A DNA stretch of 64,000 nt from Epiperipatus broadwayi. Its lineage: Eukaryota; Animalia; Onychophora. Position 1 is the stretch's first letter. Each line of letters opens with the position of its first letter. Below the pieces are notes generated by a model. It saw only the letters and a list, made by a program, of their open reading frames with translations. It had not been told where the DNA came from and searched no databases. The DNA is taken from positions 12,710,001 through 12,774,000 of the forward strand of contig JAQFVV010000004.1 of assembly GCA_028023455.1 (NCBI GenBank), written 5' to 3'. Positions 1,377 to 62,687 of this stretch are shown one piece after another. Position numbers and translations under genes: made by a program.

Positions 1377-2142
1377 TCTATTAAGATTATAAGAATTCCA
1401 TTTAAGACTGTTTTTATATCTCACTTCATATAAGAATTTCATTTTCAAGCTTTTCTTAATTTGCACTTCCAAGCATTTTAATCTGAATTAAAATTGGATA
1501 AAAAAGTTTAAATATGTAATAAAATTATAAAGTAGTATGGGTTTGCATCATAAACACAAGGTATTATTTAAAACTTGCAAGTCAATTAGTGTTCTAGTCG
1601 AAAGAATTAATTTCCTGGAAATGTTCTCAAAATACAAAATATTTCTGAATTGCTGTAAGCGACAGATAAATAACACAATTCACAACCATGACAAAATTCT
1701 AACAATTTTATAGTATGCCACTTTTAAATCTACAAAAAGTATAATTATTGATGACTCTTTGCTGCTGATGCCATGTTTATTAATTATATTTGCTTTTTGA
1801 TGATGATTTGCAGATTCTTTGCTCAAAACTTTCATTCAATTGCAAATGGTGCTCTAGCAAGTATTTAGATCCATTATAAATTGATAATAATTACAAATAT
1901 TCTCAACTTTTTCTCAAAGCAATGTGAAGGTCCTCAATCAGAGAAATTCAAGAAAATTGCTGTAGTCACGTTCTCTTAAATTGTACTTGTATAATTATCT
2001 GTTGAGATAGTCAAAATAAGAGTCATGGGTATCACATGACCCTATCTCTTAAGCTTGTAAGTTATAAAATGATGAGGAGTGTCAATTCCTCTACAAGCTT
2101 TGTGATAAATGCTTGCCAGAGCCAGCAGGAACCCCTCCCCAA

Positions 2143-2183
2143 ACCCCTGATCATGGTTTCGTGCTTTGGTACTCCTCAGAGGT
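2143..2183 (-). ncRNA. Family A hammerhead, degenerate copy
   Basis: Minus strand ACCT CTGAGGA GTAC-CAAA-GCAC GAAAC CATG ATC AGGGGT; mismatches in stems II and III. Confidence 0.75.
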
Positions 2184-2324
2184 GTCAGAGTAGGTTCAGA
2201 CACTAGATTTAAAAATACCAACCCAAGGCCAGCATTTAACTAAGTTATCTATTGAGTGGAAAATCTGAAAATTTTCAGACATCTACATGTCTTCAAACCC
2301 AGCTATCCAACTCAAATAGCTATC

Positions 2325-2366
2325 CAACTCTGAGGAGTGCCAAAGCACGAAACCATGGTCAGGGGT
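2325..2366 (+). ncRNA. Family A type-I hammerhead, catalytic core intact, 5' strand of stem I truncated
   Basis: CTGAGGA (2330-2336), GTGC-CAAA-GCAC, GAAAC-CATG-GTC, AGGGGT. Predicted cleavage after 2360. Confidence 0.85.
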
Positions 2367-2731
2367 TGGGGAGGGGTTCCTGACACAGATATTTTAAGTG
2401 TTGCCTCTGGCTAAGCATTTATCACAAAGCTTGTAGAGGAATTGGCAATCCTCATTGTTTTATAACTTACAAGCTTAAGAGATAGGATCATGTGATCTAT
2501 GACTCTTATTTTGACTATTTATAGTCTCTGCCATAAGTCTTATGCAATTTTTATATTGCTAAGACTACTACTATATGGTATGGCTGAAGATCTATCAGCC
2601 CCATATAGCTATTTGAGTTGGATAGCTGGGTTTGAAGACATGTAGATGTCTGAAAATTTCAGATTTTCCACTCAATAGATAACTTTTAGTTAAATGCAGG
2701 CTTTGGGTTGGTATTTTTAAATCTAGTGTCT

Positions 2732-2801
2732 GAACCTATCCTGACACCTCTCTGAGGAGTGCCAAAGCATAAACCATGGTCAGGGGTTTGAGGAGGGGTT
2801 C
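2732..2801 (+). ncRNA. Family A extended type-I hammerhead with mutated GAAA
   Basis: GAACCTATCC-TGAC-ACCTCT CTGAGGA GTGC-CAAA-GCAT AAAC CATG GTC AGGGGT-TTGA-GGAGGGGTTC. Stem Ia is 6 bp and stem Ib pairs at 9/10 positions; G12 is lost. Confidence 0.8.
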
Positions 2802-3945
2802 CTGACACATATATTTTAAGTGCTAGCTCTGGCTAAGCATTTATCACAAAGCTTGTAGAGGAATTGGCAATCCTCATTGTTTTATCTATTGAGATATCTC
2901 ACTATTTTTTTTAAATGGTAAAATCATATAAGTCAAAGTATTTCAATACTGCATTCACATGTTGGTGGATTTACTTCTTTGTAATCTGTTTCAAGATTAT
3001 TTGTGACATTATTTTGAAAAAAGTTTCTCAATAATTAAAGGCTGATATTTCATTGTGAAGATTATTAAGATTCATGATTATTTTTACCCCAAAATTGTGT
3101 AATAATTATTAAAGACCAAAATTTACATGATTATACTTTTATTTTATAAGTATATGTTTTATTTTTAAAAATGGAAAATAATAACTTCTAGCATAACATT
3201 AAGAATCAGCAAACCTTATAAAACTGATCACTAAACTTTACTGTTAGTATCATTTGAAATATTCTAAAAGCAATTTTAATATTTTAAAACAGAATTTTAT
3301 AGATTTATCAGAAATTAACATTTATTCATTCACATATTAAAACCAAATTTCAATCAAAAAAGATTTCATTGACTTTCTAAAGTCCCTCTACTCTTACAGA
3401 TTACTCAGTAATAAAAACATTCATTGTTCTCATTACAGGCTCATTTTTTCAAATACAATTTTTTAGGATGTTTTTCATTTATAAACATTTATTTCTATTA
3501 AATCAAGTCCAATTTACTGAATTCTGATGTAGAATAATGGTTTGAGATTGAAAAGTTAAAACATTCCAAAGAATATCATCAGGGACAACAATGGACCTGT
3601 AGCAGTGCAGGAGGTTAACCATTTCAGATTTATTACAAACTTTTTATACAAACTAACTTTTTTGATTCAATACTATAATATTTTACTGGTTTTTTTTCCT
3701 GCTACTATTTAATGGTTAATTGCCATTTTATTGCTTAAGGAAAATATTTAATGAATTCTCTTGAATTTCATAGAATTTTTAGTTTTATATTGGAAAATAT
3801 TATATGACATGAAATATATTGTACCATATCAAATTTTTAGAAGAAAAAAAAGAGAAAAAAACTATGCATGTGAATTCAGTAAAACTGGAAGAAATATTAA
3901 GCATCACCTGATCACTATATCTTAATACTAGCCCATATTTGTTTA

Positions 3946-3984
3946 TAAACAAAGCAAAACTCTCCATACAGTATCGCCACCCTG
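3946..3984 (+). repeat. Isolated terminal fragment of family C
   Basis: TAAACAAAGCAAAACTCTCCATACAGTATCGCCACCCTGT matches the termini at 22903 and 62403/62687. Confidence 0.55.
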
Positions 3985-4842
3985 TATTGCTTTGGAAGAA
4001 ATATTATTAATGAAAAAATGACTGCAACCATGTTGTAAAATTTATTAAATTTACATATTTTAATATTTTTACTTTTTAATTATTTACATTTTTTAGATAA
4101 TATATAATTGAAGTAATGTATGTGCATTTTGTGGGTGCGCTGAATGAGTTGTTCATGGAAAACACAAAAAAATATAAACCAATCAAATATTTCCAATTTT
4201 TGAAAATATCTAATTCAATAACATAAATAACTAATTTAAGAATTTCATCAAAACTACAATTAGATGATGTTAACTTTAGAGCACAAAACATTCTACGTTC
4301 ATGAAAACAAATTTATGGATCTAAGTAAATGGAAAGAAAACAATTTTATAAATGTTGATAAGTAAATAAGGTAAATAATTACTTGCACATTTGATTCTAT
4401 AATTCATTTAACATGTGATTTAAAATAAATATGTTGGTGCACTTAATCAAAATAAAATTAAATTAAAATACAAAACTATATAAAGTGATAGATTTAACAG
4501 AAAATTTAATATAATTCAATTTTATGCATATTATTACTGTATATGATGTTCTTGTAATAAAAATCATTTAATTTAATAATTATCATGAATTGAATAAAAT
4601 TACCATCATCAATGAGTCCATTTTGTTTCAATATTTTTATACATTGAACAATCTGGGAGACATAGGCATGTAAACATTAATTTGTCTCAAAGAGTGGCAC
4701 TATACAATCTAAAGCTGATACAAAGTTTTAAAAATATGCAATGACTGAAGAGGTTATGTCTGCCAATAATGAGCTGCTATTATGTTTCCTTAAAAAAGTT
4801 ATTGAAAAAAAAAAGGATATTTGTCAGATAATGCTTAATGTA

Positions 4843-13300: not shown

Positions 13301-13514
13301 CCAATAAATTACATAACATGAAGTAAAAGATCATACTTATGGAGAATAAGTTTCAATGAGAAATTCCATAGTTTTGGTTACAAAATATAATAAAAAGTCT
13401 TTTTTCAAGGTGATCTTATCATCTCCAGATAATCATGATCTCTGTTCAATGTAGAATTATCCAGTAATCTTCTGATTAAAATGTTACATGACCACCATTT
13501 CTTTCCTAGCACAA

Positions 13515-14155
13515 GCTATTAAAGTAGTAAAGCACACCTCTTGCAAGCTATAGTAATTAATAGATGCCAGAAGGTTTGTGCATTTAAATCTCTATCTAGT
13601 GCCTATTCAACCAATGTTACCAGAGTAATGTCTAGCTTATGGTTACCATTGGTGAGGAGCTTTGGATGTGAAAGCAATGCACCTAGACATTTGGATCTAA
13701 TATATCCCTTCGGCACCTACCTTTTGCCTATTTAATTCACTATAAAGCAAGGAGTCCAACTGAAAATACAATAATATTTTTAATCCAAGCTAATTTGCCT
13801 GTTTAGTCATAAAAGATCTCAATGCAGTTCAATATCTATACATTTTGGCATCTTTATGATTATGCAGGCAATTAGCTTGGACTGAAAACATTTTTGTGTT
13901 TTCAGTTTGGACTCAGGACTTTATAGTTGACAAAATAGATAAAAGGTAGTTACTGGGCGATGCATTAGAGCCAAAGTTTGCTCTCAGATTCAAGAAGTCT
14001 CACTGATGACAGCCATAAACTAAAAACTAATCTAGAAATATTACATGGATAGGCACTAAATAGGAATTTAAATTCTTGAACCTTCTGGTATCTAATGATT
14101 ACTATAGTTTGTATTAGGTGGCACTATTGGATAAAGAGTTGCTACTATTTTAAAC
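13515..14155. mobile_element. Family C long, old foldback copy (~640 bp)
   Basis: Left arm (GATGCCAGAAGG..CTAGTGCCTA..CCAAGCTAATTTGCCTG) is mirrored by the right arm (CAGGCAATTAGCTTGG..TAGGCACTA..CCTTCTGGTATC). Matches the elements at 22.9 and 62.4 kb. Confidence 0.85.
13998..14037 (+). ncRNA. Family C hammerhead, degenerate
   Basis: TCTCA CTGATGA C AGC-CATAA-ACT AAAAAC TA ATC TAGAA aligns to the 62527-62569 motif. The mirrored arm supplies CATCCAA-AGC-TCCTCA, which pairs with the family 3' strand TGGGGA-TA-TTGGATG. Confidence 0.6.
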
Positions 14156-21659: not shown

Positions 21660-22902
21660 TTAACAGTCATCATCCGGTTCCTTTTAGAATTTAATTTTAA
21701 ATATAACTGTTGAAATTTAGTTATTATAACTCTACTATTTTCCAGAGCAACATATTATTAGCAAGAAAGTTCATAATTAGGGTTAAGCAATAAAAGAAGA
21801 TACCTTTTTAAGTTTAGCAAAACATGGCTAATAAATTAATTATAAAATATACTAATTTAAACTTAGATAATAAAAAAAAAAAAAAAGAAAGTTACAACTG
21901 TTTAATATGCTGTGGTCAGTCAGAGATGATGATCAGGAAAGCAATCGGGGAAACAAGAGAATCAAAGTGAACCCTCTCTGACATGAGCAATTCTGGTTTT
22001 ATACTGAGCTTAACAGGTGTCAACAGTTAGTATCATCCCATAACACTAATGATATCTTTATTAAAATATTTTAATTAGAACATGGAACTAATTAGTAATT
22101 ATATAATATTTAAACTCACATGATCTTCAACGACCGAGGTTGAATAAAAGTTCAACTTTTATTTTATTAAAGATTTAGCAAGTTAAAATAAAATATAATT
22201 ATTATTTATTATTATTTTTAACAAACATATTTTTCTTTTAACTTTATCAGAAATTCAAAGTTAACTTTTTATTTAACCCTTAATTGACTATAGTAATAAA
22301 ATATTAATTTTAAATATTTAATAGTTAAATTTAAATATCTTGCCAATTTAAACCAAGATAATAGCACATACACACGCACATACATTCTGAATGCACACGC
22401 GAACCGGAAATTGTATTTATCTACAGTAAACTTATTTAAAATTAATTAATTTAGTTTTCTTACACCTATTTAAATATTATAAAATCACATTAATAAACTT
22501 TACTAAATTTTACCTGGAAATAATTTATACTCTTTGAATTTGCTAAACAAAGATTTTGATTGACTTATTATCCATTATTTGATTATTAAATAACGCTTTA
22601 ATATTCAAAATGACATTATTAGTTCCATTAATCTTCCTTCTTAAATTAAAGTCTACACAATTAAATAGCAACTTTTAACACCTTAAGCTTACATTTACTT
22701 AAATATTAGAGTGATATTTTTATACTATTTATACAAATTATACAATGTTATTTATGTTAAACTCATAGTAAATTAAACATATAAAATATTACTATGGAGA
22801 GTTAAACAACTGCTTCTAATGTGACATGCTAGATATTTTGATAAAAATAAGGTATATTTTATGTTCACATGATCACCATCTCTTATACTAGCACATAATT
22901 GT

Positions 22903-23117
22903 TATTAAACAAGGCAAAACTCTCTTCATACAGTAGTGCCACCCTGTGCCAATCAATGTAATCAATGGATGCCAGAAGGCTTGTGCATTAAATCCCTATC
23001 TAGTGCCTACTCATCCAATATCCCCAGACTAATGCATAAGCCTTCTGGCATCCATTGATTACTCTGGTTGGCACAGGGTGGCACTACTGTATGGAGAGAG
23101 TTTTGCCTTGTTTAATA
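22903..23117. mobile_element. Family C short palindromic copy
   Basis: Arms TATTAAACAAGGCAAAACTCTC..GAAGGCTTGTGCAT / ATGCATAAGCCTTC..GAGAGTTTTGCCTTGTTTAATA. The left arm runs on to CCCCAGACTA (23031), the reverse complement of the HHR cleavage-site region. Confidence 0.9.
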
Positions 23118-24134
23118 TTTTATGTTCTTAATCTCTATTTTTTTTTTCCAATTTTAAAGTGTGATTTCTTAAGCCCATTCATTATATGTAATTTAATTAT
23201 TTTAATTTTTGTCAAATAATCTATAAAAGGATGTTAATATTTGTTGTTATAAACTATTATAACTACTAAATCATATAGCTATTGATTTATATTAGATTCT
23301 TAAATGAACATTTCACACTAATGAGATTTTCTCAAATTATTGTAAATTTTAATAACTTTTCTGATCTTTGGTGAATGAGAAACATTTTTAACAGATATAA
23401 TTATATATTTAATGCTAAAGACATCTCATTGCATAGTGAAAAATAATATAAGATATGTTAAAAGGATGACTTAAAATTAGTGTTAGATGAAACAGATAGA
23501 TAGTTTTGAAAATTAGAGTAATCAATTATATTTATAAAGTACAAATCTGAATTTAATTTAAAATTTTGGACTAAAATTGTTTATGTACTGAAATTAACTA
23601 AACAATTGAAAGTAAATTCATTTTTCTCCCCAAAAATAAGATAAATTGAACTTCATTCAAAAACAGAATTATTACCAAATTCCTGATAAATCTCATCAAT
23701 TCAAAAAAAGCAAAAACAACAACACTATGAGAATAATTTAATTAGTGATTGCAATTTTGGTGATATATAACATCTTAAAAATATAAAGAGCTTCATGGAA
23801 GCTTTAAAACTAAGAGCTCACTATTAACTTAGGTGTTGTTCTAGATATTAAATGATGGACAAAATTGAGATAAGGGTTAGCAAAAAAAAAGCAATCACAA
23901 CGTCATACCTAAAACCTAAATAGTAATATCTACAAATAAAATTGGTAAAATAATTTTGTTCATAAAGAATTCTGCTAAATAAATGCCAAAATGCAACTCC
24001 ATAAAAAAAGTAAGTAGAAAAATTAGTTGGTAAGTTTGTAAATTTCCAGGAGCACATTTTGAATAGTTTACCATTTTATTTTTGTACTTTACCTAAGACT
24101 ATCTATTAAATAGTTAATTAGATCACCTATAGAA

Positions 24135-24230: not shown

Positions 24231-25087
24231 TAGCAAATGGAAACATAATCACTGCACAAAATGTCATATTGTCATTAATTTTTGATATTAAGATATTTAA
24301 TGTAAGCTGTCTGATATTTAATAAAAATATATGACAGAACTTACATCAACATTAAAAGTTGCTAAAAATAATTTTATTGCCAATCTTTAAAAATATAACA
24401 TTTTCTAAAACTGCAGATCATGCAAGGTATAAATAAATTCATTTTTTTTTTTCAATAAAAAGTTTTTTTTTATTTAAACAAAAGCAAAACATTGCAGTTA
24501 TATTGATTCAACCAAAAATTGTAGAAGTGATTAATTTAAATTTTAATAGAAATTCTAAAATGCAGAATCAGTAATATTCCATACACATACAGTACATTGA
24601 CATTTAACATATTATATTTGTTTAATAAATTAAATATAAAATATAAATAATTGTAGGACTAATATTAACACAAATAAATTAAATTAAAAAAAAGAGATTT
24701 TAATTATTTCCGTTACACTTCGTTATGAAATACTTTACATTTAATAAGCCTAAATCTTATTTTAAGATATATGATAAAAAATTAAAAAGATTGTTGTTTA
24801 AATATGAAAATATGTTTAACTATAATAAACAAATTAATACAAAAGTAATAATTACAATATTAATTTACATGTAATTGATTGAAAAATACCTACATAGTAA
24901 AGATCAGGAAACAGAAAGGAGCTTACTGCTAACTGAAAGGACATACTTAGAGAAACTGAACAGGACAGATTTCTAATATTCGCACTCAATGATCTTATCA
25001 CTGCAGTTACAATGAAATTATTCACATGTTGAATAAACATAGATTGCTAACAATATAATTATTCACATGTTTAAATAATAAAGATAA

Positions 25088-25385
25088 TTTTTTTTATATA
25101 TTAAATGCTTTTATTTACTGCTAACTAAATAGAAAAAAAAATAATTGTTTCTTCAACCACAATTGGGGGTTTTAAATTTAACTTGAAATAAAAACATAAG
25201 GGCTCCACAAATTAACTAAGTCAGTCCCTTATTATAAAAAATACTGATTGACTTAATTAATTTCTGGATCCCCCATGCTTTTATTTCAAACTAAATTTAA
25301 AAACCCCAATTGTGGTTGAAGAAACAATGTACCTTATTTTTCTTTTTAGTGAATGGTAAATAAAGCATTTAATATAAAAAAAAAT
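25088..25385. repeat. Family F imperfect palindrome, ~130-bp arms
   Basis: TATTAAATGCTTT..TTGTTTCTTCAACCACAATTGGGG..TTGAAATAAAA mirrored by TTTTATTTCAA..CCCCAATTGTGGTTGAAGAAACAAT..AAAGCATTTAATA. Confidence 0.85.
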
Positions 25386-29400: not shown

Positions 29401-29792
29401 GCTATATACAGCTATACAAATAACAAGATAAAAACACTAAGTCAACAGTAATTTTAAATTGAACAATAAAATATATAAAAAAAAAAAACAATCCACGCAA
29501 TAGTCAAAATGAATCATTTAAAAAAAGAATAAACTTATTAAAATAATATGGAACAAAAGTAATAATGATATAAAATATTTTATAGTGAAATGTCAAGAAA
29601 AACTATATATACTAAAAAATATCTCAAAGATATAAAATGTTTTCTTGATAATGTCAAAAAAGTTATTTCCCCAATAAAATGAATGTAACAAATAGTTACT
29701 AAAATATACCAGATATATGAAAAGGCGTAGAAGAATTTTACAAAGAATTATATATAAATAAGCATTTATTTTATATAGTGCATGTTTATAAA

Positions 29793-30395
29793 TTGTAATA
29801 CATTAAATATCAGCCTGTCAAGCTATTGTGCAAACGCTTGTAACAAGTGTTAATAATAAATGAATACTTTGACTTCCAACACAAGATATAGTATTTAGGA
29901 AAGAATAAAATGAATCCACTTATTCTATCCAACCCAAATGCTTATTTATGGGCAAATCTTAAGTACTGGAAGTGAAAGCGTGAGGATAGACCACTCACTT
30001 TAAATTACTGTTTACGATGTCTGAATGAATGATGCCGACGAAATTATCTAGAATTTACTAAACGTCATTCTCAAATGAAACTTAATGCTTATTTACATAT
30101 GTTTAAGTTTCATTTGAGAATGACATTTAGTAAATTCTAGGTAATTTTGTCGACGTCATTCATTCAGACATCGTAAACAGTAATTTAAAGTGAGTGGTCT
30201 ATCCTCACGCTTTCACTTCCAGTACTTAAGATTTGCCCTTATATAAGTATTTGGGTTGGATAGAATAAGTGGATTCATTTTATTCTTTCCTAAATACTAT
30301 ATCTTGTGTTGGAAGTCAAAGTATTCATTTATTATTAACACTCGTAAAAAGCGTTTGCACAATAGCTTGACAGGCTGATCTTTAAGGTATTACAA
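29793..30395. repeat. Family E near-perfect ~600-bp palindrome (arms ~293 bp, 17-nt spacer 30086-30102)
   Basis: Arms mirror each other almost base for base, e.g. ATCAGCCTGTCAAGCTATTGTGCAAACGC / GCGTTTGCACAATAGCTTGACAGGCTGAT. Several differences are CpG transitions. Confidence 0.95.
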
Positions 30396-31121
30396 AGAAT
30401 TATATAGTAACAAAGGTAATAAAAAACAGATAATCTATACAATAGTTATAATATCAATTAAAATTCTACTTATTTTAAATGAAAACTTTAAACATACAAT
30501 TAGATATATTAAAAGTTAAAAATATTCTAAAAATGGTGTAATCAATATTATTAAAAAATAAAAAATTTAAGAAATTGTTAAAAAAATCATAGATGAAAGA
30601 TTAAAATAATATACTATAGAACTAGAGTAGTGAAAAATTCAATGATAGTGATATTTTGCAAAAAATTTAAAAGAACATCACTAAAATATAATTATAAATT
30701 ATCTACAAAAAACTTTAAATGCAAGCAACATAAAAGAACAAGCTGGACTTTAAAAAATTTACAGTATAGGAAATCTTGTTCAATGTAAAGAGAAGTTATA
30801 TAATAGACTGAATATGAGTTGCCATTTTGCATTGGAAGTGTATATTATAGTAAGACTCATAACAATGTAAAATTCTAAAGATAATTGGGTATTAGAATAT
30901 ATAGTGATATTAAAAAAATTTATATTGGTAAAGAAATATGGAAGAATTTTTCTACTTTTCAAATAATTTTTTATAACAAAAATAATGAAAAACAAATGGA
31001 ATAAAAATCAATTATTTAAATTAAAATATAGGGGATTTGAACTCAGTGTTTCAAGCCCCTTCACTATCCACACTATCTCATACTACTAATACACATGACC
31101 GCACACATGCAGAAAAGATAA

Positions 31122-31180
31122 ATAATCACCAATATATGTATTTTGTGCTAAACCAGCACTCATCAGTTGATCCAGATTAC
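31122..31180 (-). ncRNA. Family D extended type-I hammerhead (single G12 to A lesion)
   Basis: Minus strand GTAATC-TGG-ATCAA CTGATGA GTGCT-GGTTT-AGCAC AAAA TACATA TA TTGGT-GATTAT. Stem I has 5+6 bp around a 3-nt bulge; stem II is 5 bp. Confidence 0.85.
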
Positions 31181-31257
31181 CATCTCCCATACATATATAT
31201 AATCAGTGCTCAGTTCATATTAAGATAACTAATCCTTACACTTTAATGGACCGACTT

Positions 31258-31295
31258 GTGCTGGTTTAGCATGAAATATGTATATTGGTGATTAT
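31258..31295 (+). ncRNA. Family D hammerhead, 3' half only (arm starts at stem II)
   Basis: GTGCT-GGTTT-AGCAT GAAA TATGTA TA TTGGTGATTAT; CTGATGA is absent upstream. Confidence 0.75.
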
Positions 31296-31399
31296 TTATC
31301 TTTTCTGCATGTGTGTGGTCATGTGCATCAGTAATATGAGATAGTATAGATAGTGAAGGGGCTTGAAAGTCAGAGTTCAAATTCCCTATATTTATAATT

Positions 31400-32250
31400 A
31401 GGCTCCAGGTATAGGAGTGTCTGGTATTTCAAATCTTATTTAAATTAACTGAATTTTCAAACGATTCATGGTTGCAGCAATTATTTTCAGAGCATTCAAA
31501 TGATGACTTCTTAAGACATTTGGATTACAGAGGGTATTATTTCTGCAAATAATTATCTAGAGCTTCAGAAAATATTATGAAATCTATCATATTATAGTAA
31601 GAATATAAAAATAAATCAGATAACAAAAAAAGCAACGACTGATACAATAAAATAGAATTTAATAATATGGATAGAAATATAATTCACAAAATTTATCACA
31701 GAATTAATTCAAATAACGCACCTTTTAATAAGTATGTTTATCTAAAGATCTAAGATTTGATAAACTTAATAGAAGACAAATACAAATATTGCAGAAAACA
31801 TATCAAAATGAAAAGAGATATTATTACCATCATCAGGTTTCAACTGTAAATGAGTATGTCAGAATGGTATATTAAGAACAAAAGTGAATACAAAGATTAG
31901 AGAATAAGCAAGAATCACTGACATTTTTTAAGTGGTAGGAATTACTGACGTTAAAGTTAGACTGGCTGTTTTGAAAAAACAATAGATGCACTGAAATTAA
32001 AGAAAAATTTTAAAAACCTATAAAAAGATTATATGTGATGTGAATACAAAATTATTCAAACATTTTTTGAGTGATATGACAAAAGGAAATCATGAATCAA
32101 AGGTATTAAAATAAACTTGAAGAGACTTGAAGAAAGCATTATCCATCAATTTATCAATATTTTTTGAAAATAATGATGACATATATATATAATTCTTAGA
32201 CATTATTTTATGATAAAAATATAAAAAAGAGTTAAAGTTATTTTGTAAAA
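31400..32250 (+). pseudogene. Possible highly decayed LINE RT region
   Basis: Broken peptides APGIGVSGI, LSRASENIMKSI, LQKTYQNE and KQESLTFF follow the order of non-LTR RT subdomains; many stops. Confidence 0.3.
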
Positions 32251-43743: not shown

Positions 43744-46700
43744 CTCTATTGCAATAGGACCCTAATTCTATCTCAATCTAATTAATCAAATCTATTTTGG
43801 AATTATTCTTGCAGTATTTCCATATTTTTCAAAACAGCAGGAACCATTTCTTCTATTGGTAAACTTTTTCCAAATATGCTATATTTTCATTCTTCACAAA
43901 ATTTGCCTTTTCCATTTATTTCCAATTTGTAGCTAATTTTTTTTTGTTTATAATAGCCATAATATAAAGTTATAATAATAATACTTAAATTCATTTTATT
44001 AAATGATATTAAAGGCAATCAAGTGATTAAAAAAAAGTTTGGCTTTTATTTATAAAACGTAAAATGAATTACTTGTAAAATTTTAAACAAAACCAAAACA
44101 ACAACAACAAAAAAACATCAATTTTTAACATTCCATTCTGTTGTAATATTAAACAGACTTCAAAATAAGATTTGATTTCTTTAACCTGTAATGTTTCATT
44201 ACTAAAAAGAAAAATGGTTTAAGACAGTTGTGCCACAAAAGTAATTTAAATGTCATTTACCTGGGGAGAAGAAAATCTCAACTTTATCTGATAGCAACTA
44301 AATTATTTACAATAATTATTAAAGTTCCTTATTTGTGAAGTTAAAAATATATGTTATATATAAGTCATGAAGAATATTATATAGTTAAAAATATTATATT
44401 TTTAATAAAATTCACCATATCATATATAAAAGTTATCATGGTTTTTTTTATATATATTTTACAATATATGTTAAAAAGCTTTCCAATTTTATGAAAACCA
44501 CATGAAAAATTTTATGAGTAAATAGTAAAAAATTCTTATTGAATTTTATTCTTAAAGATTTCAGTGATCTTTAAAAGTAAAAATATTTTGGTATAACATG
44601 TTAATAATAGTCCTATAAAATAGCTTGAAGATTATAAATATGCAGTATGAGATAGTAGTTAATATGCCCTATACAATGTAACTTATAAAGATTAAGTATA
44701 AGTTAATTATACATTTACCACATAAAATAACAATTGATATTGAACCCATTACCAATATAAATAGAGTATCCAAAATGTTTTTTTTTTTTTATTGTAATAA
44801 GTCATGTTACTACAAAATGTTCTAGAAAAATGCAAAAATGTTTGCATTTTGATAAATAGTGTTACTTTAAATAATAAAAAAAGATGGACAGAATACTTAG
44901 CTACTATACACTGGAGTGAAATAAATTAAGAATAGTGATAGTATTGATGAACAAATTTAAAGGTCACAATTCTGAACAGTGAACTATATCTTGTTCCATC
45001 AGATAACACTTTATATGAATAATCAATTCCTTTAGAAATTATCGATCAAAATTGTCAAACACATGGCAACTTTCACCTTGATTCAGTTATATTTTTTCCC
45101 CAAAAATTTGATGCTTCTTTCCAAAAAGAACACATTCAATCTGATGATTTTTCAATAAATATTTTATTCAATATATGCATTAAAACAGTAAAATAGAGGC
45201 TACTACAAAAGTGCCTTATTTCTCCCACAAAAAAATGGAAACTCAGCATTCAACAAAATTATATAAAGGCAACAAGATTAACTCTTGCACTATAAAAAAA
45301 GAATTTTCATTTACAAAAACTGTGTCTGTAGTAAATTTTAAAAGAATCCAATGGCCCTCAATTATTTAGGTTAAAAATTCAGTTGTGAATATTGTATATC
45401 ATTGGTATTTCTATTATTACAACTGTGTTTAAAAAGACCCAAGTACTTTCCTATCTCACTGTTTCCATCTTTTTTTTATATTTATTTCAAATAAAATCTT
45501 TAATAACTAACATAAAAAGATAAATACTATATATTCTTATATACTTAAGAATGTCAAATTAATGAATTCATATTTTAACTTACAAAATTGATGATAAAAG
45601 ACACGTTATTCGTGAGTAAAATAATTCCTATCTTTGTAAATTTTTTCATATATTTCTTAATGTGATATGATGTAATTCAAGCCATACTTTCCATTCTTCA
45701 TTTATAAAAAGAATATACTGCATTAAGACTTGTATAGATAATGACACTTACTTATTCAAACCCAGAAATAAACTGTTTGCTAATGTGGAGTGCATAATTT
45801 AGCATTTTCATTGATTATGAGATGGTCAAATTATTCCTGGTTGTATTAAATTGTTCTCAAATCAATTTTTATAATGTTATGAATAAACTATAGTTTAAAA
45901 TGTTCCCAAACAACTAGCGGTCTATTTCAAAATTCGTTTCATACATAATAAAAATTATAAAAATCGACGAACAGCACTCAAATTATCATTATTATTACCA
46001 GTATGAGAATAAAATAGTTTTCAATAATACGTAAAGCAGAAAGGTAATGATAGTTATTTTTAAAAAAATAATTTTTTGTTTCTTTTTTATTTTTCAACAG
46101 ATATTTTGCAATTTTTACTTTTTTGTTTTTGATTAAATTAAAACGAATTTTTTCCCATTATTTTTCTTTCTTTTTTAAAAAACAACTTCTAAAAAAAAAT
46201 TCTATTAACAAGAATTCACAATGCATATATAATTTGTATACTCATGCGTGTGTTCGTGTGGATCAAACACATTTTCAACATATATATAAACTCATCTATA
46301 TATGAGTATGTACTAAAATTCATGTTATAGTAATTTATTATCCATGAATTGGAATATTCTAAACTAAAGTTAGAAATCAATTACTGTGAATATAGGATGT
46401 TACTATATATTTCTAAGTTTGTACTTCCTATTTTTAATTATGCATCTTAATAATGTAAAGGTCTCATTAAAGTTTAATATTAGCTCTAAATATTATTATT
46501 ATATTTATTCTTCCAAATATTATAGGTCTGAATAATATTTACAATTATAAAAAAATTTAAACATTTTACTTTCAATCTAACAACGGTATTTATTTAGCAT
46601 ATATATATAGTAATAAAATCAAGTCATATATCACATGCCTTTTATATATATATGTAATAATATTATTATTGAATGTCTGTATTTTTAAAGCAATATACGT

Positions 46701-46757
46701 AATTATATAACTGAATATTTGTAAATACAGTAAATAAATAATTAAAAATTTTATTCA

Positions 46758-46801
46758 CTTAGGAGCGCTTTCGATTATCTCAGTAATCTGTGTCAACTAA
46801 A
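46758..46801 (-). ncRNA. Variant hammerhead motif (U3-A8), left arm of family H
   Basis: Identical to the right-arm motif when read on the minus strand. Confidence 0.65.
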
Positions 46802-46901
46802 GCTTTGAAATGCTAACTTTCCCACAATTCCGTGATCTTAACGTTTGCTGCTTGCCTGTTAATTAAGTCATGTTTACATCTGTATATTAGCATTTCAAAG
46901 C

Positions 46902-46945
46902 TTTAGTTGACACAGATTACTGAGATAATCGAAAGCGCTCCTAAG
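46902..46945 (+). ncRNA. Variant hammerhead motif (U3-A8), right arm of family H
   Basis: TTTAG TTGACA-CA GATTA-CTGAGA-TAATC GAAA GCGC TC CTAAG: stem I, stem II, GAAA, palindromic stem III AGCGCT and a CUC triplet. Confidence 0.65.
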
Positions 46946-47686
46946 TGGATAAAATTTTTAATTATTTAATTACTGTATTTACAAATATTCAATTATATAA
47001 ATATATATTAACAGCATAACTATTAACAATATATAACAAAGAAAGTGTACAGATTTCAACCATAGAATATATTCTTTTTTGACTTTATTAAGACCTTCAA
47101 TTCCATTATAGACATTATTTGACAGTCATTAAAATGTGGTTCTTGCTATGTGTTTGTCTACATCTACATAATCAATGGTTTCTAAATTTAATTTGTGAAT
47201 CAGATGAGTGTAATGATCATTGGTAGTCCTAAATCTGTTGTCGAGACTTCCAATATGTACAAAAAGATCAAATCCAGCTGGCTTCATTGTAGGATCAGAA
47301 AAAAACATTTGCTAGAATCTCATAAAAATATCAATATTTTACATCATGCTTTTTCAATTGTAGATTCTCAATTGAACTTCACAAAGATGAGTCTTGAATA
47401 GTAAAATTATCAACAAATTCTAACTCATTTGCAGTTTTTTAAACATTTTCAGTAAAGCGTATATTTTCCTGAAGGTTTATGATGATGGTATTTTTAGATA
47501 TATATTGGACTATTTCCATCATCTAATATTAAGTAATGAATGTCTTTAGAAAAATTTAACTTTATTTAAGTAATCCAATTACATTCAACTGTTAATAATA
47601 GCACACAGATTATTATATGCACTATGTTTCAAGAAGTATTATTCTCCGCTCTTCTTTAGGTGTTGTTGGACAGATCAGTGATAGTA

Positions 47687-47762: not shown

Positions 47763-50700
47763 AAATGTAGCAGTCAATATAAATTTCATATACTTATCTA
47801 TTGAGGTTCCTCCTGATTTCTCCACTTTTTTCTAAGTGGAAAGTTAATTAATGTTTTCCATACATTATGTATAGTCAACTTATGGGGTTATTCACCATTG
47901 TTATGTGATCATCTTTGAATTTTCTTCTTTTTACCTTTTCCTCTCTTCCCAACTGAACATAGTGTAGCGGTAATTCTGGTTAATAGAAGCAGCAAAATGT
48001 ACAAGTAAAATAGTACAAGATTAGTAGTTGATTAACAAAAGCTCATTTTTCATATAAACATTTATTTGCTTTAGCTATTAGACACTCCAAATGTTGCATA
48101 TCAGAGAGCATGTTCTCAGAGATATGGGGGTTATTCTATGAATAGTGTGTGTGGCATTAGTTGCATATATTTTTCCAGCAAGTGTTATGTATAAGATAAT
48201 GTATTACATCAATATGTTAATTTAATATAATTAATTAGTGTGATTTATAAAATAGCAAAATATTTCATTCTATATTTGCTTTAATGAATGGATGAAATAA
48301 CAATTAATAAGTTCGTAAATAAGAAAAGAATTTATTAATAATAAAATAAAATAATAAATCAATAAGTAGATAATAAAATACATCACCAGAATCTTCTTTG
48401 GAAGATTTTCTTTCTTGAGTACTTTACAAGTCAGAAATTATAATAAAAGTTCAAATGCTTTCTCTCTTTATAATTTTATCTGATAACTTTTCATATAACA
48501 AAAAATAATTATTATCATTTATTTCTAGATAGCTTTTCTGGAAATAATTTCATTTACTTTATTATTAGAAATTACAATACAATTCATGTTATAAATAATT
48601 CAAGTTCAAATATTATATTCTTCTCATTCTTTCATGATTAAAAAAAGTAATATCATTTTTTCATTCTTTACTTTTTTAAAAGTTCTATATTCTTTTCATT
48701 TATTTGTCTTGAATATTCATAAAGAAAAAAACCAATATCAAAGCATTAAAGGTACTGGCTGTAAAATATCTTACTGCCTTCTTGATATTCTTTTTTCCTC
48801 CTTTAAATATTTTTCTTCCTTTCAGTATTCTTACATTAAAGGCAATTACACAAGATGTTAGTATCCTTACTTCTCTGACAATCCATTTGCAGAGTTCCAT
48901 TTATCTATAGAAGTTTTTAAGTAGTTGATAAGAAAAATACATTACGCATTGCACTAGGGTAGAAAGCAATTAGCTATTTACTTTAAATTAGCAGTTCATC
49001 TTCCATACAATCCTTAGTACAAAGAGTATTTCCATCACTTTAAGTAAATTAAAAAATATAATTTATATTTCTCCTTTTACTTGATAGATAACGTATTTTG
49101 ATTTTTTTCTTCTACTTCAAAAAGAGTGAGAGAAAAAAAATATCTCATTTTAATATTTTTCAACTTCACTTACATATCAAAGCTTTAACTGTTTTTATAG
49201 TTTGGGGGGAGGGGTCATCTCCAAAATGAATTTAAAGAATCGTATTTTTAACAAAGGGGAAATTAAATAAATGAATATATCATGTTATTTTCCAAAAATA
49301 TAATGATGTAACTTTGACATTGCCAATATTACAATATGTTCAGTGGTACATATGTATTCTTCTACCTTAGATATCTGTTTTCTCTCTTCTAATCATCAGT
49401 TTGTGCTCTTTCAATTGTTTTTCAATAGGGTGACTGGTCTCACCAATACATATATTCTTCCCCATTCATATGGTATTTCATAGATGCAGTTTTAGCTTTT
49501 CAGCATTTCAAGTCTAGGCTTTGGAGAATCTAAGGATCCAGATACTGTCCCTGGACAGGCCAGCAAAACCTGAAGAAGAGAATAATACCTCTCAAAATGC
49601 TGTGCATATACTAAACTATATGCTATTACTAACAGTTGAATGTAATTAGAATATATAAATAAAGTTAAATTTTTCTAAAGAAATTCAATATGTAATATTA
49701 GATTTCAGCAAAGCAATAAGTCACTATAAAGAAAAAGGTATGAGGATGCCAATAATTTTTCTCATGATAATATTTGATCAAGTATCTAAACATTTAGTAT
49801 ATAAACTATTCCCTAAACAGGGATGCAATATACACCAGTTGAATATGCTCTTACTAAGATAACTAACTACCTATAAAGTACTTGCATTTGGCAATCATCT
49901 TTCCAATGAAGTTTTTAACCAACTTAAACATAAATAAATGAGAAAAATAAATTAAATTACAAATTAAGGTTATTTTGAAATGGCATGGGGTGAAAAGTGT
50001 ATGTTCAAATTACAATTTGTTTCCATGCTGTTTAGATAAAAAAGTGAACATACTGTTTTCATCGGATTAGAAAAAAGACCACATCCTTTGAAAATATTTT
50101 CAATTTTTTCATATTGAAAGACTTTTCTATTAAGAAAAAGAATTTCTTTTGATAAGTCAAAGCAATATCATCAGCATATATAAATGATATCAATTCTATT
50201 TCTAAAAGTTCACTAAATCAATGTATTAAATAAAGTAGGTGAGAGAACTGAATCCTAACATACATCATTTTATAAAATTTTGTATCTATTACAATTAATA
50301 TTTTCATTTGAAATTCTCTATTGGAGAGTTATTATATCAAGTAAATTAAGAGATTTCCTACAAGTAAAATTTTCAGATAGATTCAGAAAAAAAAATTACA
50401 CGTGGAATCATTAGCTAAAATTAGATAATAAAAGTAGTTCCATTTTTTTAATTTATTTTGAAAGCTTTTTCAGTGTGAATAATTAAAAACAAAACATTTG
50501 CAATAGCTTCTTCCTGCCCTGAACTAAATGGCTCTCATTAACAAAATTGTTATTATAATTATTTCAAAAGCTTACAGGAAATACATGGTAATGATATTGG
50601 CTTTTTGACTTTTGGATTTAGGTTTTCAGAAATTCTGGAACTATTCTATCTTTTCTTATGGCCTTTTCTTGGTTTAAGATAATCCAGAACATATTCAATT

Positions 50701-57600: not shown

Positions 57601-57738
57601 AATTTTAAACAATTTATCGTACTTTAAAAATATCAAAATTATTATTTAATCATTATTCAAGTCATTCCAGACTACATGTTTTAAATAAATATATATAATA
57701 AAGTTTGATTGTATTCATTTCTAACTTTTCCTAAATTT

Positions 57739-57843
57739 AAAAATTTAAATATAAGTATACTCACATTAAGTTGTGTGCCATAAGACAATTAAAAAATTTA
57801 AATATAAGTATACTCACATTAAGTTGTGTGCCATAAGACAATT
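57739..57843 (+). repeat. Exact tandem duplication, 53-bp period
   Basis: AAAAATTTAAATATAAGTATACTCACATTAAGTTGTGTGCCATAAGACAATT twice. Confidence 0.95.
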
Positions 57844-58081
57844 CATCTCAACATATTTAAACACAATTTCTGGTTATCTTAAAAAGAAAAAAGCTTCTTA
57901 TTGTGATGTGGCCCCTAGAGAATTTTTCAAACAGATGCTATATATTTATTTCACAATTGGTGAAATTTATTAGAATTATATCAATCTATGAAGATGTAAA
58001 CAATGAGGTTTGCCAATTCCTCAACAAACTTTGTGATAAATACTTAGCCAGAGCCAGCACTTAAAATATCTCTGGGGTATG

Positions 58082-58151
58082 AACCCCCCCCCCAAACTCC
58101 TGACCATGGTTTCGTGCTTTGGCACTCCTCAGAGAGGTGCCAGGGTAGGTT
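58082..58151 (-). ncRNA. Family A extended type-I hammerhead, intact core (best candidate for activity)
   Basis: Minus strand AACCTACCC-TGGC-ACCTCT CTGAGGA GTGC-CAAA-GCAC GAAAC-CATG-GTC AGGAGT-TTG-GGGGGGGGGTT. Predicted cleavage between 58102 and 58101. Confidence 0.9.
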
Positions 58152-58196
58152 GGCACTCCTCAGAGAGGTGCCAGGGTAGAATGAACCTATCCTGGC

Positions 58197-58239
58197 ACCT
58201 CTCTGAGAAGTGCCAAAGCTCAATACCATGGTAAGGGGT
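58197..58239 (+). ncRNA. Family A hammerhead, inactivated copy
   Basis: ACCTCT CTGAGAA GTGC-CAAA-GCTC AATAC CATG GTA AGGGGT; several core substitutions. Confidence 0.75.
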
Positions 58240-59436
58240 TTGGGGGGGAGGGGGTCCTGACAGAGATATTTTAAGTGCTGGCTCTGGCTAAGCATTTATC
58301 ACAAAGCTTGTTGAGGAATTGGCAAACCTCATTGTTTATAACTTACAAGCTTAAGAGATAGGGTCATGTGATCTATGACTTTTATTTTGACTATGAAGAT
58401 GTGTCTCATAAATGCTAATGACTATCACTGCTATTTAATACAGCAAAAGTATCTTCAGTAATCTTATTTAATAGATCATGACTAATCACAGATGACTATT
58501 TCTCAGGGATTAAATATAGTTTTGAAGAATCAAAAACTATGGAAATGATTTAGTTTTCTTTACTAATCAAATGTAGGAAGTGTATCAAAAATAAAGATAT
58601 AATTTATATGCAATATTGCTATCACTAATTTAACCAAGGGCATTTGGCTCCATAATTCAGGGAGGTTAGATAACAGATGTTTATCCATAGCTACATAATA
58701 ACATAAATTAAATTGAGAAGGAGCGCTTGTGACTATTAGTAACCAATCAGATCTTAAGCGCTTGAGAAATTTGCACTCTCTTAATTTAATTTTCAATACC
58801 GTCTGTGCTTTATAAAATATTATAATAACATAAAGAGAAATGTTATTATCAATGATAAAAAATTTGAATATATGCTAATTCTGGATTGTTTTTTTAATCA
58901 CAATAGTTTTTGAAATAATTTATATCTAACTTCGTAATATGGACATCAAGATTAGGATGCTTGCCTAAGAATAATCTTTAAACTGCTATTGAATACAACC
59001 TATAAGAAGTTTCATATAGCTTATAAAGAACTTGTAGTAGTAATTTTCTGTTTGTAGGACCATAAACTTGAAAATATGGGTCAACTTTAAATATTTTGAT
59101 AGTTTTTTAGGTAAAAATGTGATTTTAAATATTAAAATGCAGCACAAATTCTAAAAAAAAAAAAAAAAAGTGGTTTTAAATATTAAATGTAATACAAATT
59201 CTAAAATGTTGTATCCAACAAAATAAAAGAGATAGTAATAGTGATATAACTAATTCAAATAAATTTAGTAGCAATATGGTTGTTATTCTCTCAAATTTAT
59301 TATATGGAAACGAGATGATTTTACTTTCATTGTAATACAAATAAGCAGAAAAAAATTATTTAAGAATACTTGTAATTCTAAAGCACTCATTGACTTCAAG
59401 TTCTGATGAAAAGATGTAATAAACATAAACTAATAA

Positions 59437-59482
59437 AGCACTGAGTCATCTTTCAGCAAAGCATTGCCAGAATCATAGTGCT
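59437..59482 (-). ncRNA. Variant type-I hammerhead motif (A3-U8) in the PLE 3' region
   Basis: Minus strand AGCACT ATGATT-CT GGCAA-TGCT-TTGCT GAAA GATGAC TC AGTGCT. Perfect 6-bp stem I; 84 nt past the PLE stop. Confidence 0.7.
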
Positions 59483-59565
59483 AAGTAATATTATGGAGTA
59501 CAGGTGTGCTTATATAAGTGATGTGATGTAATATGTAAATGAGGCACAATATGCAAATAAGGCAA

Positions 59566-60300
59566 TTAGATATTCAATTTTTCAGGCAATGGAACACATG
59601 AATCCTTTTTGTTCATAGAATGTCAACCCTTTGCAATTGCCCAAGTTTCTTTGTATTTTCCTTTCTTATCATCACTTTCAGAACAAATTGTTCTAACATT
59701 TGATGGAGAAATCATGTGACCTGTGGCATATTCATGATCAAGAAAGATTGACCTGTATTCAATCTTTTGTTTTGCTCTATTGTATAAATATGCATATTGG
59801 GCAATTCTTGTGGATCTATTTGTGTGAAATTCACTGTAATACACAGCTGCAGGAAGGATTACTGCATGTAATTTTATAGATCACCTGAGGAGCATGTTCC
59901 ATTGGTATCTTGTCTTTAGTATTGTTCAACAAATTATTAAGAGAACATGACCATCTATGCTAGTGCAAATATTTCTAAGGTTATTTGCAATATGAGGAAC
60001 ATAAGGAGGGCTATTCAGAAAATGCGATGTGAAGATCATAAGACCAATTAGCTATGTTCTTTAGCTTGCTGGATGTGTTGATAAGGAATCTACAATTACA
60101 AAGGTATATCTTCACTGCTCTGTGTGTATGAATAGAGACAAACAGTAACATACTTCCTAAAAATATATTTTACAATGAGCAACATGATTTTTGTAGGACA
60201 GGCAACTTAAATTTATGTTATGGATATTATAAAAAGATGCAATATGATTTTTTTCATTGGAAAAAGTTTTAAATCATTTACAAAAAGAAATTTGTTGCAT
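59566..60300 (-). mobile_element. Decayed Penelope-like element (RT thumb/linker plus GIY-YIG)
   Basis: PYVPHIANNLRNI, NLLNNTKDKIPMEHAPQVIYKITCSNPSC, then (frameshift) AVYY..HTNRSTRIAQYAYLYNRAK..IFLDHEYATGH..KYKETWAI..MNKKDS. Collinear with the PLE at 1-1268. Confidence 0.85.
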
Positions 60301-61538
60301 AAAAGATTAAAATACTTCCATTATACAATGTAACTAAAGGACTAGCATGTGACATACATAGTCATATTTGGCTTATAGCAAATCCTAATCTGTTTATTTC
60401 TTTATAGTCTTTTCCTCTTTTTTTTTTTTTGGAACATATACCCATTTAGAAGTAACTGCTAATAATATATATATATTGTGACAGTACATTCAGCTTGTCA
60501 AAAAAAAATACTATTGATTAAATTAGATTAAAATTAAATTATACATATAATCCTCCAATAGATTTTAAACTATTTCATTTAAGAATAATTAGTTTTTATG
60601 AGCAATGTATTTTAAATTAACCATTATTTTAGCGATGTCTAGTAAATTAAATTTGTTTTTTATTTAATAATTTGCATTTAGACCCGATATTTAAATAAGG
60701 GGTTTATGTGTACATACGCATGTATATATGGTTATATAAAATATCAAATGTCAAAAGCTAAAACTAATCAATATAATAAACTAAGTACACAAATTCACAA
60801 TTAAGTCACTAGTGAAAATTAAGTTACAAATCCACTAACAAAGATTTCCCTTGTCAAGAAGAACTTCTTGACAGGAAAACCATTAGTAGAAGATTTGTAA
60901 TTTAATTTTCGCTAGTGATAGTCAATTAGTTTATGTTTTATTTGTACATACATTGCTTGGGCATATTTATTTTAAAGAAATATATTTTTGTGTATTTATT
61001 TTAAGCAAGCAAATTTTACATTATATTATTATTGAAATAATGTAAAATGTTACAGCACAAAGATCTCATAATAGTATTAAACCAATAATTAATTAGGCTT
61101 GAAGAGTCAAGGGAATAGTGTGAATCGGGAGAGTGAAGGAGATCCTTTAAAAAAAATATATTCATTTAACAAATTATCTTTATATTATAGTGTATTTAAA
61201 GGGTAATTAAGAACTAATAAGCTGAAGTCAAACAGTTTCAAAAAAAAAAAATAGGTAACAAGTTTTATTTAAATAATTTAAGCAATTGACATTTCTCAGC
61301 AAAGCTATTAAATCGGTTGACAATTTATAATAGTTTAGTCTTTATTTATTACAAAAGTCTTACATGAAAAAAAAATCGCCATGATAAATGAATCAATAGC
61401 CATAAAGTTTGGTAGAGATCGTTACTTATTTGAACTTTCTTTCTACTGGATTAGAGAAAAAAAAATTTGCTCTTGTGATATTCAAATTTAAAATTCTTTA
61501 GAAATAAACCATTGCATCAAAAATAAACACTTTCAATA

Positions 61539-61640
61539 TTTTTTTTCTCATGTGTCATAGCATCAGCCGGGAAGCGAACCCGCTAACCCGGGATAACTGC
61601 TTGTAAAGCAGCTGTCGCTGATCTCTCGACCACCAATACC
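61539..61640 (-). mobile_element. Short tRNA-derived SINE, same family as 57.5 kb
   Basis: Minus strand GGTATTGG TGGTCGAGAGAT (A box), GCTGC-TTTACAA-GCAGT, GCGGG-TTCGCTT-CCCGG, GATGCTATGACACATG and an A-rich tail. Confidence 0.75.
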
Positions 61641-62402
61641 TGGCATACTTTTATTTTGTTGAAATAAATACACTATAAAATACTTAAATAATATTGTGTC
61701 AATAACGTCCAGCTGAAAAAGGAATAAACTGTAAACAGTGTACATTAAAACAATTGTGTTTATAAAGTATTGTTTTTATTCGTGAGATCAAAATGTTTAA
61801 TTTGTAAAGTTTATATTCATCTTTTTTAAGTGACGATACAAATTCATATGTCAATTATAAATTTATTACAGATAAAAAAAGAGATGGGGGGACTCTATCT
61901 ATTAAAGATGTAAAATAAATACATTGAACATTAAATACGTTACAATCGACTGACAGGTGATGTAAATATTTTACATTTATTATATCAATTAAAAGAGTAG
62001 TTTAAAAATGATTACCTACTGTTTATACACTTTCAAACATTAGAACATCGAGTAGATAGTGAGTAGTATGGCGTTGATAGTGCATTACGCTCTATAAATG
62101 GATGGAGGGGGTTAAATTGGCATACTTTATAACAGAATGAACAACTATTATTAATAATTGCCTACATATTCTTGTGCAATATAATTTTATTTTTTACTAT
62201 GATTTAAATATTTTAAGTTGTAATTATATATTTGTAATAGGGAATAAACATGGTATGATTTATTGTGAGAGAAACATTACATAAAAAACAGTTAAATAAT
62301 AAGTGCTATTATAGTTATACCTTTCATCACACTATATTTAAACAAAGTTAATATTTCATATAAGTAATGTTTTAAAAGTGATGACCAAATGTCAACAGAA
62401 AG

Positions 62403-62687
62403 TTATTAAAACAGGCAAAACTAGTGCCACTCAGTGCCAACTAGAGTAATCAATGGATGCCAGAAGGCTTGTGTATAAAATCCCCATCTAGTGCCTACTC
62501 ATCCAATATCCCCAGACTAGTAAGCTCCTCACTGACAAAGGCCACAAGAAGCCACAAACTAGTCTGGGGATATTGGATGAGTAGGCACTAGATGGGGATT
62601 TTATACACAAGCCTTCTGGCATCCCTTGATTACTCTGGTTGGCACTGAGTGGCACTACTGTATGGAGAGTTTTGCCTGTTTTAATAA
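62403..62687. mobile_element. Family C young palindromic copy with a central hammerhead
   Basis: 62403-62521 is a near-perfect reverse complement of 62558-62687, apart from an 11-nt deletion in the left arm. The spacer carries the 5' half of the HHR motif. Confidence 0.95.
62526..62570 (+). ncRNA. Family C type-I hammerhead, degenerate core
   Basis: TCCTCA CTGACAA A GGC-CACAAGAA-GCC A CAAAC TA GTC TGGGGA: 6-bp stem I, palindromic ACTAGT stem III and a GUC triplet; G8 and G12 are mutated. Confidence 0.65.

Follow-up and report, generated by a model that had tools for sequence, protein, structure and literature searches.

Head-to-head palindromes in the genome of Epiperipatus broadwayi as probable paired insertions of short, mostly hammerhead-bearing retroelements mobilised by Penelope-like machinery

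Insertions of Penelope-like elements (PLEs), whose machinery combines a reverse transcriptase (RT) with a GIY-YIG endonuclease, are 5'-truncated and partially tandem, include an inverted 5'-truncated copy, bear a tail at one end and show a microsatellite bias (Craig et al., 2021; PMC8557442). The purified PLE protein Poseidon PAc cleaves and extends both target strands, and reverse transcription starts at two internal sites bracketing the tail, with no strand difference in vitro (Frangieh et al., 2024; PMC11167929). Metazoan non-LTR retrozymes were defined by Cervera and de la Pena (2020; PMC7229834), and animal retrozymes have been argued to derive from the pseudo-long terminal repeats (pLTRs) of PLEs (Li, Clavereau and Pollet, 2026 preprint; bioRxiv 10.64898/2026.07.22.740005). 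Inverted pLTRs and PLE-dependent retrozymes are already mentioned in a curation guide. Here, small palindromic repeats were analysed in a stretch of 64,000 nucleotides from the onychophoran Epiperipatus broadwayi (assembly GCA_028023455.1, contig JAQFVV010000004.1, positions 12,710,001 to 12,774,000), hereafter the window. The window is AT-rich (~25% GC), has almost no long open reading frames (ORFs) and belongs to a 5.6-Gb assembly.

The palindromes, assigned to families A, C, D and H and to one family devoid of a hammerhead ribozyme (HHR), are best explained as insertions of short non-coding retroelements of the retrozyme type, most of them with a minimal type-I hammerhead, mobilised in trans by PLE (RT plus GIY-YIG) machinery. 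A probability of about 0.78 was given to this reading. Every palindrome arose in a single insertion and contains two copies that meet 5'-to-5', so that both outer ends are element 3' ends. One end of the pair stops at a downstream terminus, with a tail of 40-52 nt (long end), and the other at an upstream terminus (short end). An earlier note on this DNA had proposed ORF-less 'pLTR-only' elements made by PLE priming on both strands of a target. The footprint of the insertions supports that mechanism, but the units are of the retrozyme type (421 nt in family A, 410 nt in the related family B).

Like metazoan non-LTR retrozymes, the units are non-coding, measure a few hundred nucleotides and carry a type-I hammerhead each. 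They also share with them head-to-tail arrays and dispersed monomers, target site duplications (TSDs) of more than 4 bp, low GC content and a proposed dependence on PLEs. Head-to-head inverted insertion is not described by Cervera and de la Pena (2020) or Li et al. (2026), and the word 'inverted' is absent from the main text of PMC7229834. With PLE insertions (Evgen'ev & Arkhipova, 2005; Arkhipova, 2006; PMC8557442) the palindromes share 5' truncation, partial tandem copies, a 5'-truncated copy placed in inverse orientation at the 5' end, an extension that only one end carries, insertion into AT-rich or microsatellite DNA and a hammerhead in the repeated part. Unlike them, the units have no ORF and span 120-560 nt per arm, so the product resembles a miniature inverted-repeat transposable element (MITE). 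Tails measure 40-52 nt here versus 30-40 nt in PLEs. As with Poseidon PAc (PMC11167929), the tail lies between two RT start sites, each target strand appears to serve as a primer and the target is AT-rich; unlike the protein in vitro, every complete pair uses one site per end. HHR cleavage is dispensable for Poseidon PAc in vitro; the hammerheads described here are predicted from sequence. In the twin priming of L1, the 3'-OH of the second strand reportedly primes on the RNA and gives an inverted segment within one TSD-flanked insertion, and the palindromes resemble it in both respects. The inverted part of L1 is an internal 5' segment of the same RNA; here, each of the two arms begins at a bona fide 3' initiation site, and a palindrome results.

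The footprint was established on copies from the whole genome. Family A was searched for genome-wide, and its 421-nt unit was mapped onto 29 further loci; families A and C together were followed in 59 further genomic loci and family D in 13 copies. Four loci of family B were chosen by Rfam HHR score alone. In its 29 further loci, family A was found as head-to-tail arrays of 421-435 nt units (four or more units in L014 and L023), as single copies with variable 5' ends and as inverted pairs, the arms of which are often tandem multimers on one side. All inversions were of the minus-then-plus type, i.e. 5'-to-5'. Copies anchored on their 3' region revealed two alternative termini ~52 nt apart. Complete family A pairs combined one long and one short end in 18/18 cases, with a single TSD of 9-20 bp per pair, and several of them sit in (TA)n. 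The single copies had the long terminus in 8/8 cases. Family C pairs were long/short in 17/17 cases, with TSDs of 8-17 bp; no tail-to-tail case occurred among them and their centres varied from copy to copy. For the two families together, the long/short rule thus held in 35/35 complete pairs, the whole pair being enclosed by one TSD of variable length and the inner copy by none. Genome coordinates gave the same two end classes and head-to-head neighbours for families D and H; H was mostly found as single-orientation units. In the window, the rule holds at all the loci A1, A2, C1, C2, D and H and at the HHR-less palindrome. Families A, C and D all occur as 5'-truncated singles, tandem arrays and inverted pairs. 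The proposal that both outward ends are RNA 3' ends agrees with these data, since all inverted pairs are head-to-head and their outer ends lie at defined element 3' termini. Outcomes that had been named as contrary to it, namely TSDs fixed as TA or at 8 bp, terminal inverted repeats of symmetric form and a random orientation of the ribozyme, were sought and not found: TSDs vary, ends are asymmetric and orientation is constant.

The 5' ends of the arms are not scattered. At least one arm started between -35 and +25 nt from the first base of the HHR core in 19/21 family A pairs (P = 1.7e-9 versus uniform expectation), as did 5/10 of the singles. A second cluster of arm 5' ends lies 130-175 nt upstream. 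The right arms of C and D likewise begin at or within the ribozyme. This clustering fits template RNAs that often start just upstream of the ribozyme, or an RT that stops there. The proposed course of events is as follows. The endonuclease would make a staggered break in the target, and the 3'-OH of each target strand would prime reverse transcription on element RNA, either one multimeric molecule or two RNAs. One strand would use the downstream RT start site and the other strand the upstream one. The two cDNAs would then be joined at their 5'-truncation points, which would gather at the ribozyme's 5' edge, probably because that is where many template RNAs start or RT stalls.

Hammerheads were searched with Rfam model RF00163 (gathering cut-off 34 bits) and with a strict type-I descriptor. 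No Rfam hit at gathering score was obtained anywhere in the window, and the single Hammerhead_1 match at E <= 10 (27.2 bits, 58096-58138, minus strand) lies under the cut-off. The strict descriptor found two sites in the window, 2330-2360 (+) and 58132-58102 (-), both in family A and with an identical core: CUGAGGA, GUGC-CAAA-GCAC, GAAAC, CAUG, GUC. With a helix I of at least 3 bp, one strict type-I site was observed versus 0.015 expected from 200 dinucleotide shuffles of the window. Three other copies of the family A motif in the window are decayed. Family B, found elsewhere in the genome, passes the Rfam cut-off with 35.4-40.2 bits, and in 12 natural copies taken from families A, B and C, RNAalifold found six pairs with double changes in helices I and II. 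The family C motif, drawn from 37 genomic copies, reads CUGA(C/U)GA-A-GGC-CACAA-GCC-A-GAAAC-UA-GUC with a 6-bp helix I; it is near-canonical because of the A.A at positions 10.1/11.1. Its variants are typical of CpG decay, and the window copies are decayed (CUGACAA, CAAAC). In family D, CUGAUGA, a 5-bp helix II and GAAA were present in 9-11 of 11 copies met by chance in other loci, and a small-range Rfam E-value scan gave only a 13-bit Hammerhead_3 trace. In the window, the left D copy reads GCACAAAA, with G12 mutated, and the right copy, which starts just past CUGAUGA, reads GCAUGAAA; the 'reciprocal CpG lesions' noticed earlier in D are therefore correct. Helices I and II, GAAA, a GCGC loop and UC are all present in the family H motif, whose core UUGACACA lacks A9. 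This motif gave no Rfam hammerhead hit even with the search limited to 111 nt, and its U3-A8 architecture showed no enrichment over shuffles when the two H arms were counted as one. The earlier claim of type-I HHRs in all four families thus stands for A, where the motif is canonical, and for C and D, whose family copies show it clearly although their window copies are decayed; H is only hammerhead-like. In all four families the ribozyme or ribozyme-like strand points outward in both arms, as had been claimed, with the cleavage site ~60-166 nt from the terminus.

A repeat search of the window returned 19 inverted-repeat pairs. All previously reported loci were among them, with inverted repeats at 2007-2886 and 57986-58402 (A), 22903-23117 and 62422-62657 (C), 31024-31393 (D) and 46703-47000 (H). 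The original list of seven palindromic loci was located in full but is incomplete: a C-like pair, a single C copy and the HHR-less palindrome, all described below, are also present. No credible ORF was found in the arms, in agreement with their description as ORF-less.

Locus A1 is flanked by CTGTTGAGATA on the left (1999-2009) and CTATTGAGATA on the right (2886-2896), with the TSD pattern CT(G/A)TTGAGATA. Its left arm (2010-2323, minus strand) has the long terminus, with a tail at ~2010-2062; its HHR (2179-2149) is decayed, and its 5' truncation falls at the end of a 134-nt module called X. Its right arm (2325-2885, plus strand) contains 1.3 tandem units and has the short terminus. It begins exactly at the HHR core (2330-2360), the core being intact and the 5' strand of helix I missing, and a second, decayed HHR lies 421 nt downstream of the first (2751-2781). 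The left arm of A2 (57996-58150, minus strand) has the short terminus, at position 57996, and its canonical HHR (58132-58102) is intact. In the right arm (58181-58390, plus strand) the HHR (58203-58233) is decayed, the terminus is the long one and the tail lies at ~58338-58390. The TSD of A2, CTATGAAGAT, lies at 57986-57995 and 58391-58400. The X module (window 2190-2323 and 2605-2738) is common to family B (L001:1460-1546), whose 410-nt unit is head-to-head in 3/4 loci. Eight family A pairs span ~460 bp; their ribozymes are 137-150 nt apart, with the X module between them in either orientation. In this subclass, 142 nt of unique spacer separate the arms and the junctions differ by several bases. 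Family A sequences were also present in sequencing-run contigs from several organisms, with one tandem-type joint; the RNA or DNA type of these contigs is uncertain and they give no read ends.

Locus C1 is a head-to-head pair (22867-23116) within an 11-bp TSD, ATTTTATGTTC (22856-22866 and 23117-23127). The long terminus belongs to the left arm (minus strand), whose central end lies at the cleavage-site triplet of the HHR; the right arm has the short terminus. The second pair, C2 (62405-62739), has a left arm with the short terminus and a right arm with the long terminus and a decayed HHR at 62532-62564 (CUGACAA...CAAAC). Its 9-bp TSD is CAGAAAGTT (62396-62404 and 62740-62748). A single 5'-truncated copy of family C with the long terminus was found at 3900-3993 (minus strand), flanked by a 13-bp TSD, GGAAGAAATATTA (3887-3899 and 3994-4006). 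An older, diverged C-like head-to-head pair lies at about 13480-14100, with a tail motif at ~13504 (-) and a decayed HHR at ~14000 (+).

The left copy of D (31025-31257, minus strand) has the short terminus and an HHR running from 31166 to ~31127, with CUGAUGA, a 5-bp helix II and the mutated G12 mentioned above. The right copy (31258-31435, plus strand) begins within the HHR and has the long terminus, with a tail of ~41 nt (31394-31435). The pair has 98 nt of unique spacer between the arms and a 13-bp TSD, TTATTTAAATTAA (31012-31024 and 31436-31448). D copies were met by chance in 11/64 unrelated 3-kb loci (including L025, L030, L033, L034, L037, L044, L047, L055, L059 and L060), which implies a very high genomic copy number. 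Direct repeats of D lie ~372 nt apart in L025, and one tail-to-tail adjacency of two D copies was seen in L055. ARAGORN found no tRNA-like part in the family. The left copy of H (46654-46886, minus strand) has the long terminus, with a tail of ~49 nt, and the usual genomic form of the family is a single-orientation unit like this copy that extends further 5'. The right copy (46887-47008, plus strand) has the short terminus and is inserted in (TA)n. The putative HHR-like motif of H lies at 46899-46945 and has 5 bp in each of helices I and II. The palindrome at 29755-30395, the largest in the window, has no HHR. Its arms of 293 nt are 96% complementary, a ~40-nt extension is present at the left end only, and an 11-bp TSD, AGAATTATATA, lies at 29744-29754 and 30396-30406. 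At least 40 scored genomic copies share one centre, and elsewhere in the genome the family forms tandem arrays of ~333 nt, e.g. in contig C6567. This palindrome shows the same footprint, which is therefore independent of a recognisable ribozyme.

The link with PLEs was sought in the window and in the loci of the families. PLE RT/endonuclease genes are present in this genome. Relic 1 (279-1376, plus strand) is a frameshifted remnant running from RT to GIY-YIG and then to an HHR-like motif (1322-1376) with an AUGAUUA core. Relic 2 (59437-59959, minus strand) comprises a GIY-YIG part (59599-59959) and, behind it, an HHR-like motif (59482-59437) whose core is AUGAUUC and whose 6-bp helix I is perfect. 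Both had been recognised as PLE relics earlier, and this was borne out by tblastn matches to RT/GIY-YIG-type ORFs beside family copies in L020 and L029, where PLE relics lie near A arrays. The protein-Atlas clusters nearest to the L020 ORF carry RVT_1, HTH_animal and GIY-YIG. Pfam detected no RT or GIY-YIG domain in the relic ORF pieces or in the L020, L029 and L055 ORFs, so the identity of the relics is based on tblastn and on the Atlas look-alikes. Their reported HHR-like ends do have a hammerhead-like layout, but with AUGAUUA or AUGAUUC as core and no Rfam hammerhead hit. The AUGAUU architecture is mildly enriched (two instances with a helix I of at least 4 bp versus 0.08 expected from shuffles), and a third instance occurs near the 3' end of L045 (-). 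The three sequences are unrelated to each other, and two of the three lie behind PLE ORF relics. In these motifs, AUGAUU replaces CUGAUG, with A3/U8 instead of C3/G8. They are hammerhead-like candidates, to be taken as a lead only.

A 3' tail motif, TAAGAGAT(A/G)G.GATCATGTGAT, is common to families A and C and also occurs in a third, C-like family at ~13504. This common motif suggests one partner for these families. The tails of D and H are unrelated to it. The four families had been called sequence-unrelated; this agrees with the tails of D and H but not with the motif common to A and C, nor with the modules that A shares with family B. The motif is absent from both window relics and from the PLE fragments in L020, L029 and L017. 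ORFs of non-PLE RTs were also seen near family copies, in L016 (2360-3187, minus strand; RVT_1, E = 2e-16) and in L045, so other RT classes are also present in this genome.

Several points weigh against the explanation by PLE-driven paired insertion. The autonomous PLE partner is one that we infer from the footprint only. The retrozyme nature of the units is deduced from DNA sequence; circular RNA intermediates or expression are also expected of a retrozyme. The tails are not significantly stable as hairpins (folding z-scores of -1.0 to +0.8). Start sites of PLE reverse transcription in vitro are alike on the top and bottom strands (PMC11167929), so published data do not account for the strict long/short rule observed here. 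Arm similarity is barely higher within pairs than across loci (0.91 versus 0.885), and the partner arm was the nearest neighbour in only 1/21 C pairs and 4/20 A pairs, a weak signal. Finally, in D and in the HHR-less palindrome one central junction is common to many old copies, which could point to a palindromic master copy instead of a pairing that arises anew with every insertion. According to this alternative, the inverted dimer itself propagates whole, at least for D, for the HHR-less palindrome and for the ~460-bp subclass of A. The many old copies collinear through the same centre and the common span of the eight A pairs are in its favour. It is nevertheless unlikely, since a palindromic RNA copied from its 3' end would not yield a far end that coincides exactly with the other RT start site and carries a TSD. 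Moreover, the central module of the A subclass occurs in either orientation, with junctions that differ by several bases, and the centres of family C vary.

A snap-back of the nascent cDNA was also considered. Here, a single event of target-primed reverse transcription would occur, the cDNA would fold back and copy itself, and the second target strand would remain unprimed. The layout of arm, unique spacer and arm (with 98 unique nt in D and 142 in eight A pairs) and the recurrent junction positions speak for it, but self-copying should give the same terminus at both ends, yet 35/35 pairs are long/short. Tandem multimers on one side and the published extension of both strands in vitro (PMC11167929) also speak against it, and we consider it quite improbable. 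Two independent insertions, the second copy homing into or beside the first by means of an endonuclease that recognises the element sequence, would be consistent with the reported recognition of the tail region by the PLE endonuclease, with the tail-to-tail adjacency of D in L055 and with the PLE relics near A arrays in L020 and L029. Only a slight chance was left to this scenario: a single TSD surrounds the whole pair and none the inner copy, orientation is always head-to-head, and the long/short complementarity holds in 35/35 pairs. Ordinary MITEs or foldback DNA transposons moved by a transposase, suggested by the long inverted repeats, small size, high copy number and absence of an ORF, are largely refuted by the variable TSD length (8-17 bp), the 40-52 nt extension on one side only, the variable centres and the occurrence of the same sequences as 5'-truncated singles and head-to-tail arrays.

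Within the reading as paired PLE-driven insertions, it is tentatively proposed that integration here follows a strict rule that in vitro work does not show, and which remains rather doubtful: complete paired insertions would use the downstream site plus the upstream site, singles would be tailed and arm 5' ends would lie at the 5' edge of the hammerhead. If this is true, the two strands of the break would be served by two non-equivalent initiation modes of one, possibly dimeric, ribonucleoprotein, and the ribozyme region would mark where the two cDNAs meet. Minimal hammerheads of the PLE type whose helix III loops are palindromic (CAUG, ACUAGU) reportedly function as dimers. Speculatively, dimerisation through these loops may hold two template RNAs head-to-head.

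This kind of element is already known, both as animal retrozymes that are non-autonomous PLE derivatives and as inverted pLTRs. The new aspects are the very abundant new families and the ORF-less dimers of PLE type that mimic MITEs; the long/short rule (35/35) and the hot spot of 5' ends at the ribozyme go slightly beyond the published in vitro data. The dozens of small, clean insertions provide a natural read-out of PLE integration, with both-strand priming, two start sites and preferred 5' ends, which complements the single published in vitro system. Repeat annotation of invertebrate genomes rich in PLEs is corrected by recognising this footprint, which combines a TSD of variable length, a tail at one end and a head-to-head layout. 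As had been predicted, annotators would file these palindromes as MITEs, or else as miRNA-like hairpins: Rfam miRNA-precursor models matched the palindrome centres 22938-23082, 30029-30159 and 58146-58221 weakly, well under their cut-offs, so such dimers could be mistaken for hairpin RNA genes.

Three further features were observed in the window. A palindrome of ~300 bp at 25087-25385, with a similar palindromic copy at L007:173-364, showed no obvious TSD or hammerhead. An 83-nt sequence at 61558-61640 (minus strand), resembling a tRNA-Val and close to PLE relic 2, was detected by ARAGORN and may be the head of a SINE or a pseudogene. Inverted repeats of 126 nt (84%) at 47521-47646 and 49578-49703 enclose 1.9 kb and may belong to a different element with terminal inverted repeats; copies of their arms were found in L012, L017, L025 and L056.

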